A stretch of 64,000 bases of DNA from Ostrea edulis (Eukaryota). How positions within the stretch are numbered: the stretch's first letter is position 1; every line of letters starts with the position of its first letter. The position numbers and the translations under genes were made by a program. Where the stretch lies: the NCBI RefSeq assembly GCF_947568905.1, contig NC_079167.1:28644001-28708000 (forward strand), in the 5' to 3' direction. A model generated the notes under the pieces. It worked only from the letters and a program-made list of their open reading frames with translations, searched no databases and was not told the DNA's origin. Shown here piece by piece: positions 1 through 45,893 of the stretch.

Positions 1-94
1 TCAGAAAATCCAGTTATATCACGAGAGAACACAGCTGATTGTGATGCTGGATCGTCTACTGATAGTATTCCCTTCCGCATTTCTATCTCAGTCA
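1..94 (-). CDS. Paralog B exon (VTEIEMRKGILSVDDPASQSAVFSRDITGFS...), cut by window edge
   Basis: Acceptor ttttttcag|TG; homologous to gene A exon 33413-33561 (VTEIEIEKGIL). Confidence 0.85.
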
Positions 95-43200: not shown

Positions 43201-45893
43201 CCGTTGCTACCTAAAAAAAAATTTTTTAAATGCTGGGGCCCATATTGAAATTATGAAGATAGAGAGCTGTTTATGGATTGGTTTGAACATGGAAGCTTGC
43301 ATACATTTTTCAAAAATATTTACTTAAGTTATAAATCAAACCCTTCTTCAAAGCATAAAATCTTAGGTATCCACTGAATTCTGGTGTCATATTTCATATG
43401 ATGAAATAGAAATTGCAAACAGAGAGAACTATGAGTGAGAATTTTGTGCAAGAATTTCAATCCTTTTCTTCTAATTGACCATGCATCCAACACGAAATAT
43501 ACCTCCTTCTGAACAATGTATGTAGTGCTGTAGATTTTTAAGTTTTTAAAATTTGAAATCATATAGGAAGGCGTAGAGAATTTATCATAGGGGTTAAACC
43601 GAAATGTATAAGACCTGTGTAAGTTGTTGCGACAATCTCAGGCGTGTACATTTTTAAGGTATGTTCAATATCATCATGAGATTAATATTGATCAACGCTT
43701 AGGGACTTATGATTTCTAATATAAAAATTTCCTAAAAGTTGACATTTTCGTTAATTTTTATTAATAAGACAAGTTTTGAATCATCTCACAGGAATTGACA
43801 TTGATTTTGAAAATAGAAATTAGTTTGGGGAAAATAAATCTTGATTTTTTTTGTATTGTCTCAATCTGAAAATTTTAGTAATTGGAGAATATTTAACATT
43901 TAGGCCGGGTCTGAAATAGTTGTTGTCTTAACTTATGAGTCCTTTTTCTTTTAGAATACCGTAGCAGCTTCATATAGAATGATATAAATCAGTTTGAGGT
44001 AGTGATAACCTTTCATTACTTAAACATTAGCAACTGTTTCTGTGAGTTTCTTTTCATATTACTTACAGGTAAATGTGATCAGAGAGTATGTAAGAACAAA
44101 GACAAGGGAATGATGTACAGACCTTGCTGGTTTGAAGATATGGATGGTGTCAAGGGAACTAGCAAAGCTATGGTTCAGAGCAAAGATGGTCACCTGCTGG
44201 CTCTTGGTTCAGAAGATGGTTATTTATTCATCTACAATGTAGAATCTGGGTACCCTATTGGACAAAAGGCACCAGCAACCAAACACTCGGCCTCCGTTAG
44301 TATGAAAACAATACTGGCAGGTCCATAACCAGGAGTTTTCATAGATATCACAGGGGGTGGGGTGCAAACTTCTAGATTATTGAGGGTTTTGGTACATACA
44401 TGTGTGTGGGTGTGTATGTGTATATATATATATATATATATTAAAAGAAATAGAATAAACAGTACACAAAGTTAAATTTTTAACTTTGTGTACTGTTTAT
44501 TCTATTTCTTTTAATATTTTATACCGGACACTGTGATTTTTTAAAAACACAATTTGGATATATATATGCGTGAAGTGTTGCTGTTCATACCCTTATGTAT
44601 GTAGCGGTCAGCCGGGTTCGATCGCCGGTGGCCAAATAGGTCAGTTGGTAGAGCACCTGACTAAAGATTCAGGGGGCCCGGGTTCGAATCCCGGTCTGGT
44701 CCGTTGCATTTTCTTCCTTCCTGTTACATGTATATTCAAAAATAAAATTTATTTTTTAAATGAAACTGAGTTTGAAATACAGATATAGAGTAAAATATAT
44801 GCCTCAAATACCTGCATACCTATTGTAAAAAAAATTAGCAATATGAATACTGTTTTTCAGTTAATTTACTTTGATGGTGCATGACATTTTTCAACTCTGG
44901 GGCTTTTCGAGCATATCTCCCCTCCCCTTGGTTATGGACCTGGTTGTTATGGGTACATTATTTTCAAATTGAGCTGCTTTTTCGGATGCAGAAATCACTT
45001 ATATAACTATAAAATATATATTAAATTGATTTACATGAGCTGTTCAACTATTCAAATGCTTTGTTTCATAAGTAATTTTTTATTATTATTGATCTGTTCT
45101 ATTCAAAATTCCTTAAATTCGATGGTGATATTGTTAGTTAGTTTCAGACCTGGAGAAACATCTCATTGGTATGGTACAGTTATAAATAATCAAATAACAA
45201 TTAATATATAATATAGTGAGTATATAACCATGTGAAAAGAATCATGTGACCAAATATGGAGGATGGACAAACATATAACATATCTTATAAGTTTCGTAGG
45301 CTCATTGCCTTTATCAAAAACCTTGCTAAATTACATAATGCTTTTCTGTTTCTTATTGAAAAAAGTTGCACAAGTTTGAACATGATTTCGTTAAAATCAC
45401 ATTTCTGACATTTTCTTTGAGATCTTGCTATTGTTTGAGTATTGACCCTTTTCTATCAACAGCTCATGTGCAGATATTCTAAATTTTTTACTCAATATTG
45501 TAGTAAAATTTTTTGGTAAACATTTTCTTGAATAGTACTGAAGATAAAAACTATCAGGTAGATGCAGAATCAGTATAATTTTTTTTTCTTCTTATTGTTT
45601 TTGATAATTCATCAAAATTACAATGTTATGGATATCAGGTGTTTCATTGATAGGTGATCAAGGCTGCATTTTCTCCCAACGTGAAGTGGGTGGCGTCAGC
45701 TTGTCAGAACAACACAATCAAGCTCTGGGACACGTCCTCCGGAAAAGAAATTTTCAGCACACGTGTGGACGCTGAGGTCCAGCAGATGAAATTTTCCCCC
45801 AATTCCAAATATCTGATCCTCCTGACAGGGACAGACTTCACGAGAGTACTAATTTATAGAATGCACTCTGAAACAAACAAGGAAATTTCCTAA
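17041..45893 (+). CDS. NWD1/NWD2-like: Gene A: NACHT domain- and WD repeat-containing protein (NWD1/NWD2-like STAND NTPase), about 1744 aa
   Basis: Exons 17041-17053, 18887-18930, 22823-22884, 25256-25299, 27236-27373, 28197-28399, 29360-29536, 31056-31242, 33413-33561, 35715-39465, 44069-44295, 45654-45893 total 5235 bp and join in frame. Motifs: RIFISSTFSDM, Walker A APSGNGKTS, Walker B IILLDSLDQL, C-terminal WD40 repeats (ITLWNF, LRIWLL, IKLWD). Confidence 0.9.
17274..17666. repeat. 48-bp minisatellite, about 8 copies
   Basis: Unit catgcttacagtaaaacatggytacagtgagcatgcttataatgaatt. Confidence 0.93.
19001..19695 (+). mobile_element. Degenerate Helitron/Helentron-like non-autonomous element
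   Basis: Starts tttttatgcccc with a hairpin, ends ggggcatt...ctagt; internal diverged repeats. Confidence 0.5.
19791..22695 (+). mobile_element. Helentron-type non-autonomous element (HINE-like) with a central ~155-167-bp satellite array
   Basis: agctcacctga...tcaggtgagc subterminal inverted repeats, (TCTG)n, 3' ggcccatgggcc hairpin, T-rich flanks. About 16 monomers that resemble, from memory, the oyster Cg170/HindIII satellite. Confidence 0.88.
23330..23640. mobile_element. MITE with TTAA TSD (Kolobok-like) containing a tRNA-like cassette
   Basis: ttaa|ggtggctcgctacac ... gcgtagtgagctacc|ttaa; internal - strand tagctcagtggttaaagcatt...agttcaaat. Confidence 0.72.
24150..25125 (+). mobile_element. 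5'-truncated, decayed LINE (RT C-terminus and CCHC-like tail)
   Basis: Fragments AKIELGKSPL, IETGRY, EDEKHFLLDCPLYKH; aataaa followed by a ttgaa-type tail. Confidence 0.72.
25621..26910. repeat. 46-47-bp minisatellite, about 27 copies
   Basis: Unit cagtacaaccaaytaaactgtagtgaatataaaggtctgcagrat(t)a. Confidence 0.95.
27236..27373 (+). CDS. Gene A exon (...LPHLPRSVVRIFISSTFS)
   Basis: aag|AT acceptor, CAG|GTAAG donor. Confidence 0.9.
28197..28399 (+). CDS. Gene A exon, DUF4062-like core
   Basis: ttccag|AC, GTG|GTAAAT; DMRWGV and CLQEVENC motifs. Confidence 0.93.
29360..29536 (+). CDS. Gene A exon (AIMGDRYGFRPIP...WYKLDENCQPPKYILQ)
   Basis: Not in the ORF track; read by hand; 177 bp, phase 0/0. 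Confidence 0.9.
29716..30726 (+). mobile_element. Helentron-type element with a triplicated 3' terminus
   Basis: aggtcacctgag start; (ggagtagtgatactttttca...actcaggtgac.gataaggcc) x3; ggcctcttgtt end. Confidence 0.75.
31056..31242 (+). CDS. Gene A exon (PIRSQFSFFGDYSPGC...EHYLS) with duplicated splice sites
   Basis: 187 bp; lies inside ORF 30942-31388. Confidence 0.88.
31425..32900 (+). mobile_element. Helentron-type element containing a 38-bp minisatellite (about 32000-32345, about 9 copies)
   Basis: ttttagctcacctg start; actcaggtcagcgatgtggtccatgggcc end; unit gtgtaaattacaccatgtctccaagttacacaggaaaa. Confidence 0.72.
33413..33561 (+). CDS. Gene A exon (VTEIEIEKGILK...EDGK)
   Basis: ttaaag|TG, AAG|GTATG; phase 1/0. 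Confidence 0.88.
33882..34610. repeat. 43-45-bp minisatellite, about 16 copies, SINE-derived
   Basis: Unit aaggtgccatgtcacagtagacacaataatgaaccctcactgctg. Confidence 0.92.
35715..39465 (+). CDS. Gene A giant exon (3751 bp): NACHT NTPase, helical domains and most WD40 repeats
   Basis: Open frame includes ORF 35907-39473; tgtag|GTT acceptor; ACAG|GTAAAT donor. Confidence 0.95.
39488..40830 (-). mobile_element. Mariner (DD34D-type) transposon with a disrupted transposase
   Basis: TA TSDs; ~30-bp imperfect TIRs (tgagggttgttcgatatgtaatgtgcattg / caatacacatcacatatagaacagcccttg). Motifs WIPHILT, TGDKTW, HDNAPSH, HPPYSPELAPCN. Internal TGA, a frameshift, and the third catalytic D appears as N. Confidence 0.93.
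41533..43070 (+). mobile_element. Degenerate Helitron/Helentron-like repeats
   Basis: attaggcccccaccatatggcgg start hairpin, diverged internal repeats like 19001-19695, actcaggtgagcgatgtg terminus at about 43036. Confidence 0.5.
44069..44295 (+). CDS. Gene A WD40 exon (GKCDQRV...LLALGSEDGYLFIYNV...KHSAS)
   Basis: ttacag|GT, TCC|GTTAGT; phase 1/0. Confidence 0.85.
44438..44517. repeat. Perfect AT-rich palindrome (39-bp arms, 2-nt spacer)
   Basis: atattaaaagaaatagaataaacagtacacaaagttaaa-tt-tttaactttgtgtactgtttattctatttcttttaatat. Confidence 0.92.
44630..44702 (+). pseudogene. tRNA-like sequence (SINE head or tRNA pseudogene)
   Basis: A box TAGGTCAGTTGG, B box GGTTCGAATCC, but mismatched acceptor and D stems and an 8-nt anticodon loop. 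Confidence 0.6.
45654..45893 (+). CDS. Gene A last coding exon (VIKAAFSPNVKWVASACQNNTIKLWD...stop)
   Basis: Classic WD40 repeat; gatag|GTG; ends TAA. Confidence 0.88.
   Translation: MIKAAFSPNVKWVASACQNNTIKLWDTSSGKEIFSTRVDAEVQQMKFSPNSKYLILLTGTDFTRVLIYRMHSETNKEIS

Follow-up and report, generated by a model that had tools for sequence, protein, structure and literature searches.

We analysed a 64,000-nt stretch of the Ostrea edulis genome (contig NC_079167.1, positions 28,644,001 to 28,708,000), referred to below as the window, and found in it two homologous genes of the NWD1 type that point away from each other, gene A and gene B. Positions are counted from the first letter of the window, negative numbers lying to its left. 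Our preferred reading, to which we give a probability of about 0.72, is that A and B are two functional STAND receptors of the NWD1/NWD2 family, old inverted duplicates that diverge in their WD40 parts, have a common effector domain and undergo ectopic gene conversion.

Both gene models translate exactly into database proteins. The spliced translation of gene A reproduces P0001, which carries the database name 'NACHT domain- and WD repeat-containing protein 1-like [Ostrea edulis]', and every intron is GT-AG; position 45893, where the interval described by an earlier sequence-only reading of this DNA ended, is the stop codon of gene A. Only exons 1 to 7 and part of exon 8 of gene B lie inside the window, and we completed the gene with 40 kb of the same contig to the left. 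The remainder is open throughout, with an uninterrupted exon of 3733 nt outside the window and canonical splice sites, and the spliced translation reproduces P0009 (1730 aa) exactly. The pair of homologous divergent NWD1-type genes recognised by the sequence-only reading is hence borne out, and gene B, which it had allowed might be a truncated pseudogene, has an open 1730-aa frame in which Walker A (APSGNGKTS) and Walker B (IILLDSIDQ) are intact.

Searches with Pfam models placed DUF4062, NACHT and HTH_NWD1 over their thresholds in gene A. DUF4062 (PF13271) scored 43.3 bits in A and 44.3 bits in B against a cut-off of 24.7, NACHT (PF05729) 28.7 bits against 26.7, and the NWD1-type winged helix (PF25469) 36.4 bits against 27. 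Models of WD40 propellers gave many matches at amino acids 800-1010 of the big exon, each of them under its own family-specific cut-off. An open reading frame of 1188 aa in gene A (35907-39473), with NACHT, NWD1-type winged helix and WD40 propeller signatures, matches part of P0001 at 100%. Each protein would thus comprise, in this order, a TIR-like DUF4062 domain (also called 'NIR'), a NACHT ATPase, an NWD1-type winged helix, a helical region and WD40 propellers. Vertebrate NWD1 and NWD2 have DUF4062, NACHT, winged helix and propellers in the same order, in keeping with the public annotation of gene A as NWD1-like; the oyster genes differ from them in belonging to a bivalve-expanded branch, in an insertion of about 100 aa, and in forming an inverted pair with conversion tracts. 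Amphibian NWD1 proteins are 33-34% identical to B over about half of its length, and more than 100 NWD1/NWD2-like relatives were found across animals, among them molluscs, amphioxus, hemichordates, cnidarians and amphibians.

Comparison of the two genes yields a protein identity of 51% over 1705 aa and an overall coding nucleotide identity of 59.5%, the same codon being used for 30-50% of the identical amino acids. The exon phases, which the sequence-only reading had called the same, are indeed identical (2,1,1,0,0,1,0,1,0) from exon 4 of A and exon 3 of B onward; upstream of this, A has one additional small 5' coding exon. Common to both are Walker A, Walker B, the arginine of an RYGF motif and the glutamates of an SVTEIE motif. 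Elsewhere in the O. edulis genome, no DUF4062 exon exceeds 47% identity to that of gene A, and no further closely related locus was found there.

The only asymmetry in sequence that we observed between A and B is their evolutionary rate: that of B is about double that of A, chiefly owing to the WD40 part. For the big exon, the ratio of nonsynonymous to synonymous substitution rates (dN/dS) is 0.11 between A orthologs and 0.18-0.25 between B orthologs, the latter across three species. Most of this difference comes from the WD40 part, where dN/dS is 0.13-0.15 for A and 0.29-0.37 for B. Both genes are therefore under purifying selection, which argues that B is no decaying copy. Since the faster change of B falls chiefly in the propellers, A and B are most likely two receptors with different ligand specificity and the same output domain.

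To characterise this output domain we modelled the N-terminal 361 aa with AlphaFold2 from a 57-sequence alignment (mean predicted local distance difference test score, 90.3). With the whole model, Foldseek retrieved from the Protein Data Bank (PDB) only weak alpha/beta-hydrolase noise. The exhaustive structural search of VIA-align had TIR domains at its top (IL-1RAcPb, Z 10.8; MyD88, Z 10.2; SARM1, Z 8.6), with the TIR heterodimer of RPS4/RRS1 (4c6t, Z 10.2) among the top matches and nucleoside deoxyribosyltransferases and CMP hydrolase at Z of about 9.3-9.4. A profile search of PDB sequences recovered the TIR-like domain of human TEP1 (11gz_A, E 8.5e-23). As modelled, the N-terminal DUF4062 domain has a TIR/nucleoside-deoxyribosyltransferase-like fold; the sequence-only reading had anticipated this, and the AlphaFold2 model, the VIA-align scores of 10-10.8 and the homology to TEP1 agree with it. 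DUF4062 has been described as a TIR-like NADase family that includes the TEP1 domain in 2026 preprints (10.64898/2026.05.01.722283; 10.64898/2026.09.04.749371), and the bacterial defence proteins Swarozyc/KpSwz, PsAvs2, Vulcan and Vesta belong to the same family.

The catalytic glutamate of this fold does not fall where the sequence-only reading had placed it, namely in a CLQEV motif likened to the catalytic helix of TIR domains. The CLQEV glutamate (E154 of A, 28355-28357, in the first of the two conversion tracts described below) is invariant and has a TEP1 counterpart in CLGEVEN, but it sits in helix alpha-B, and E1008 of TEP1 aligns with SVTEIE instead. In the profile alignment, oyster SVTEIE lies on SVTEME of TEP1 (chain residues 110-115 of 11gz_A); with a numbering offset of 893, set from R908, R954 and R976, chain residue 115 is E1008. 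The oyster residue on this position is E294 of A; at least 90% of the 57 homologs have it too, and in the model it sits in helix 211-221, at the alpha-C position. The local alignment around SVTEIE is weak (4.5 bits), and phmmer with amino acids 270-345 of A alone did not reach TEP1; the assignment therefore rests on the profile alignment, the identity of the motif, the position of the helix and the near-invariance of the residue. We predict that the catalytic glutamate is E294 in A and E283 in B, encoded in an exon that has not been converted. Of the active-site arginines of TEP1, the equivalent of R976 is kept in both oyster proteins (in RYGF), the roles of these residues being described for TEP1 alone. 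In the oyster TIR-like domain, the large insertion of about 100 aa separates strand beta-C from helix alpha-C.

The sequence-only reading had also noted that a segment of the DUF4062 exon appeared homogenised between A and B. Our results confirm this and extend it to a second genus. In tract 1, 174 nt are perfectly identical between the two genes, against the 59.5% of the whole coding sequence. Its 5' border lies 32 nt inside the DUF4062 exon, and at its other end it takes in the first 3 nt of the intron, after which the introns are unrelated. In the TIR-like domain it covers the last part of helix alpha-A, strand beta-B, the BB loop, helix alpha-B and the first part of strand beta-C. Over the 204 nt of this exon that were compared, the synonymous divergence (dS) between A and B is 0.22, and the differences are confined to the first 33 nt. 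Tract 2, in the winged helix, has 2 mismatches in 119 nt, with flanks that differ at one position in every 4-6 nt; for amino acids 700-765, dS is 0.28 between A and B but at least 1.3 between orthologs. No other stretches of the protein are as conserved as the two converted segments.

In Saccostrea echinata, whose A and B orthologs are described below, tract 1 behaves in the same way. Its nucleotide identity is higher between paralogs of one species (95.1% for A and B of O. edulis, 95.6% for those of S. echinata) than between orthologs (87-90%), and dS is 0.20-0.22 within species as compared to 0.6-0.9 between species. A control region in the NACHT domain groups by orthology instead (A-A 77-80%, B-B 75-90%, A-B 62-64%). 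Indeed, A and B of S. echinata carry the same species-specific synonymous changes in tract 1, while the first 33 nt of the exon retain paralog-specific differences in both genera. This within-species similarity implies that the same segment was homogenised independently in the two lineages. On the comparative evidence, both short tracts are true gene conversion. As the copies are near each other and inverted, ectopic conversion would repeatedly overwrite these two short segments.

An assembly artefact behind the identity of tract 1 was considered and rejected, on the strength of independent DNA unitigs and of the comparison between species. In unitigs from independent runs, tract 1 is joined to the own flanks of B, with a break or branch at the tract borders, and one unitig continues from the tract into sequence unlike the flank of B, as expected if the tract has a second context. 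These unitigs make an artefact unlikely.

The pair has counterparts in other oysters. In S. echinata, the orthologs of A (P0002) and B (P0026) occupy opposite strands, and 10.1 kb separate their annotated coding starts; in S. cucullata an NWD1-like gene of 1755 aa lies 7.7 kb upstream of the B ortholog (P0010), on the other strand. The synteny thus extends head-to-head to both Saccostrea species, and it stops short of Crassostrea angulata, which has two A-type genes in tandem and a Fibrinogen_C gene upstream of the first. A search with B, which covered annotated proteins between 0.55 and 1.75 times as long as the query, returned no B-type protein from Crassostrea or Magallana. Nor do the 10 kb that precede the first A-type gene of C. 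angulata hold a remnant of B, though a displaced or fragmentary copy could have escaped both searches. The 104 kb that surround the pair in O. edulis contain no Fibrinogen_C gene. The two tandem C. angulata genes are about 84-94% identical in each exon block, with no special tract, and are uninformative on how general conversion of the DUF4062 exon is.

A quick maximum-likelihood tree search placed the B clade (Ostrea and the two Saccostrea) as sister to the A clade (Ostrea, Saccostrea and Crassostrea), both inside the oysters and after the pearl oyster Pinctada (Shimodaira-Hasegawa-like approximate likelihood ratio test, 100), with a B branch about twice as long; dS between Ostrea and Saccostrea is about 1.1-1.3. 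A mitochondrial-carrier gene (Pfam Mito_carr) stands head-to-head with a related NWD1-like gene in Argopecten and Mytilus; the loci examined in Saccostrea and Crassostrea yielded none. It may be the dicarboxylate carrier SLC25A10, which its peptide fragments resemble. From the position of this gene in O. edulis (Table), B lies between the carrier gene and A, and A is in the ancestral orientation. The simplest history suggested by these sequences has the gene duplicated in inverted orientation in the oyster stem, after the split from pearl oysters, and B later lost in Crassostrea; alternatively, B may have arisen later and changed at an accelerated pace.

Under our preferred reading, then, A and B would have arisen when their ancestor was duplicated locally and in inverted orientation among the oysters, and purifying selection would have kept both. 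By homology, binding of a ligand to the WD40 propellers would release oligomerisation of the NACHT domain, and the NACHT oligomer would cluster the TIR-like domains, leading to NAD+ cleavage or to signalling through an adaptor. The model for such ligand-released oligomerisation is Apaf-1, a STAND ATPase with an N-terminal effector and C-terminal WD40 propellers, to which NWD1, NWD2 and TEP1 are compared in a 2026 preprint on DUF4062. Apaf-1 consists of CARD, NB-ARC and WD40, whereas the oyster effector is TIR-like and the ATPase is NACHT. With the TEP1 domain (11gz) the oyster domain has in common a homologous TIR-like fold and the equivalents of E1008 and R976; it differs in the residues at R908 and R954 and in its large insertion. 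NADase activity of the oyster proteins would be a prediction, and their closest human relatives, NWD1 and NWD2, had none in vitro.

Several observations weigh against this reading. The oyster proteins have serine at the positions of both R908 and R954 of TEP1. Human NWD1, NWD2 and NPHP3 were inactive in vitro as full-length proteins, and so was the Drosophila Nwd1 domain that stood in for the truncated human one (10.64898/2026.05.01.722283; 10.64898/2026.09.04.749371). Our RNA searches returned no RNA run; the four best-matching runs are DNA, with contigs that cross the introns without exon joints, and they are silent on expression. Finally, the solved structure of KpSwz, a bacterial DUF4062 protein, has a core dimer interface and a regulatory loop built from helix alpha-A, the BB loop and helix alpha-B. 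Conversion in the oyster genes sits on this type of interface and BB loop as well as on the winged helix, which would fit selection for compatibility between A and B. Because the placement of the tracts also fits such compatibility, independent action of A and B stays the default and is not demonstrated.

The arrangement of the gap between the genes bears on this question. The sequence-only reading had put the 5' ends about 10 kb apart, with much of the gap made of transposable elements. The start codons are in fact 12.6 kb apart; young repeats are present, though those that can be recognised account for at least 4.6 kb, or about 37%. They include a long interspersed nuclear element (LINE) that is 96-97% identical to many genomic copies. 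Only two blocks of the gap are conserved with Saccostrea, one upstream of each gene; they are 82-95% identical to Saccostrea upstream sequence and lie 11.4 kb apart. Direct comparison of the sequences upstream of A and of B revealed no element common to the two, and nothing like a short joint promoter. Since the conserved blocks are separate and have nothing in common, A and B each seem to possess a proximal control region, or a 5' untranslated exon, of their own. By its layout, the gap is no compact bidirectional promoter, and the default reading is that A and B would be independently regulated receptors that act independently.

The best-placed rival, which we nevertheless consider unlikely, develops the sensor/executor module put forward by the sequence-only reading: a paired NLR module in which B, with its faster-evolving propellers, would be the sensor and A the helper or executor of a mixed oligomer, conversion being selected for the compatibility of interface and winged helix. 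Plant NLR pairs have a short joint promoter and are asymmetric, with a sensor that carries an integrated decoy and a helper. The oyster genes are like RPS4/RRS1 and RGA4/RGA5 in being divergent homologous STAND receptors with TIR-type N-terminal domains. The rival is favoured by the head-to-head arrangement, kept in Ostrea and two Saccostrea despite a dS of about 1.1-1.3, by the asymmetric rates of A and B, by the fact that one exon segment was converted in O. edulis and independently in S. echinata, with a common 5' border, and by the correspondence of the converted elements to the AB dimer interface and the BB loop of KpSwz. In contrast to the plant pairs, however, the oyster start codons are 12.6 kb apart with a separate conserved block upstream of each gene, and both proteins have the same architecture and the full set of motifs. 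We detected no division of labour in the sequence, that is, no integrated decoy, extra domain or degenerate P-loop in either A or B. Moreover, Crassostrea has two tandem A-type genes and no B among annotated proteins or in the 10 kb upstream; the converted stretches are those of highest conservation, in which conversion comes most easily and does no harm; and conversion between nearby inverted paralogs is expected regardless. The division into sensor and executor therefore finds no support, given the separate upstream blocks, the complete motifs of both genes, the absence of an extra domain and the A-type genes without B in Crassostrea. As it stands, and as far as its sequence tells, the locus is an ordinary local duplicate in an annotated gene family, and the sensor/executor idea lacks sequence support.

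A bolder form of this idea would make A and B the first genetically linked animal NLR pair, in which B would sense a ligand through its fast-changing WD40 propellers and nucleate the mixed oligomer, and selection would keep recurrent micro-conversion of helix alpha-A, the BB loop, helix alpha-B and the winged helix as contact surfaces; we regard it as quite improbable. Even less probable is that gene B is a decaying or unexpressed duplicate and that the pair has no joint meaning. The longer branch and higher dN/dS of B, its absence from the Crassostrea searches and the failure of the RNA searches to return an RNA run would agree with decay, but an open frame of 1730 aa in 11 exons with canonical splice sites, dN/dS values of 0.18-0.25 across three species, far below 1, and intact catalytic and ATPase motifs would not. 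Finally, it is very improbable that the near-identity of the DUF4062 exon owes nothing to conversion and comes only from very strong purifying selection, whether on the protein or on an RNA element: the peptide of this exon is 91-94% identical to that of gene A across the compared oyster copies and highly conserved in the aligned bivalves, but synonymous sites are identical over 174 nt where orthologs have a dS of 0.6-0.9 in the same exon, the synonymous changes specific to S. echinata are common to its A and B, the same codons are not common to all oyster orthologs, an equally conserved peptide just upstream (amino acids 79-108, 83% amino-acid identity) is at the background synonymous identity of 0.38, and a perfect run of 173 nt has a chance of about 2e-10 even at a per-site identity of 88%.

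DUF4062, which animal NWD1 and NWD2 carry, was shown to be a TIR-like NADase domain only in 2026. The oyster pair constitutes a natural experiment in this respect, with a near-identical effector segment, renewed by conversion in at least two genera, and WD40 sensors that have diverged. A and B hence lend themselves to work on what ligand the propellers bind and on a possible activity of the TIR-like domain.

Table. Features of the A/B locus in window coordinates (negative positions lie to the left of the window).
Feature	Position	Strand	Remarks
Gene A, NWD1-like, 1744 aa, 12 coding exons	17041-45893	+	NC_079167.1, window 28,644,001-28,708,000
Gene A exons 1-6	17041-17053, 18887-18930, 22823-22884, 25256-25299, 27236-27373, 28197-28399	+	
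Gene A exons 7-12	29360-29536, 31056-31242, 33413-33561, 35715-39465, 44069-44295, 45654-45893	+	
Gene A NACHT motifs	36111-36413	+	Walker A APSGNGKTS (K478), Walker B IIILLDSLDQ (D568, D571)
Gene B, NWD1-like, 1730 aa, 11 coding exons	ATG 4465, end -5397	-	ends 5.4 kb past window start
Gene B exons 1-8	4465-4403, 4177-4131, 3267-3227, 3027-2899, 2768-2566, 1921-1757, 1381-1195, 94 to -54	-	
Gene B exons 9-11	-778 to -4510, -4647 to -4867, -5143 to -5397	-	outside window
Predicted catalytic Glu294 of A	33424-33426	+	second Glu of SVTEIE
Glu283 of B	83-81	-	equivalent of A Glu294
Tract 1, gene A copy	28229-28402	+	3' 171 nt of exon 6 and 3 intron bases
Tract 1, gene B copy	2736-2563	-	exon 5
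Tract 2, gene A copy	36843-36961	+	in big exon; winged helix, about aa 716-755
Tract 2, gene B copy	-1897 to -2015	-	outside window
Gap between start codons	4466-17040		12,575 bp; A and B head-to-head
Conserved non-coding block upstream of B	4748-4789		about 300 bp from ATG
Conserved non-coding block upstream of A	16227-16317		about 750 bp from ATG
Foldback-type repeat	5137-5941		800 bp
Young LINE	10203-13979	-	broken endonuclease and reverse-transcriptase frames; Pfam Exo_endo_phos, RVT_1
48-bp tandem array	17311-17658		just inside first intron of gene A
Satellite array, 166 bp	20048-22578		gene A intron
Satellite array, 47 bp	25615-26910		gene A intron
Satellite array, 38 bp	32002-32345		gene A intron
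Satellite array, 45 bp	33904-34607		gene A intron
Duplicated acceptor array, gene B	1343-1537		four 49-bp copies; upstream use out of frame
Duplicated acceptor array, gene A	30938-31076		two 69-bp copies; in frame
Mitochondrial-carrier gene	-15639 to -9572	-	O. edulis, just beyond gene B; loci of Argopecten and Mytilus: L009:415-5548 and L010:1-7830

Gene A is 28.9 kb long and gene B about 9.9 kb, because the introns of gene A carry satellites and transposon remnants. Satellite arrays of 166 bp (15.5 copies), 47 bp (28 copies), 38 bp (9 copies) and 45 bp (16 copies) lie in these introns and explain much of the difference in size. Directly 3' of the donor of the big exon lies a broken transposase of the Tc1/mariner type, with helix-turn-helix and DDE_3 pieces (39571-40654, minus strand). 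Intron 11 holds a tRNA-like sequence (44630-44702, plus strand; Rfam tRNA, 45.4 bits), for which ARAGORN gives an odd four-base anticodon, so that it is probably a tRNA-derived repeat or a pseudogene. In both genes, the acceptor and first codons of the exon whose peptide starts with PI(R/S)SQFS (exon 7 of B, exon 8 of A) are tandemly duplicated. Further along the window, at 53482-54273, a tandem array with units of 19 bp and 148 bp gives rise to a long spurious open reading frame on the minus strand, with no Pfam match.

Two peculiarities were seen among the relatives in other bivalves. P0016 and P0020 of Mizuhopecten yessoensis are identical over the N-terminal 170 aa or so and then diverge, which could reflect common 5' exons, chimeric gene models or conversion. 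In P0018 of Pinctada imbricata, a CLLEVENCQK...GPNFV segment is repeated several times, and this could be the consequence of exon duplication or an annotation artefact.

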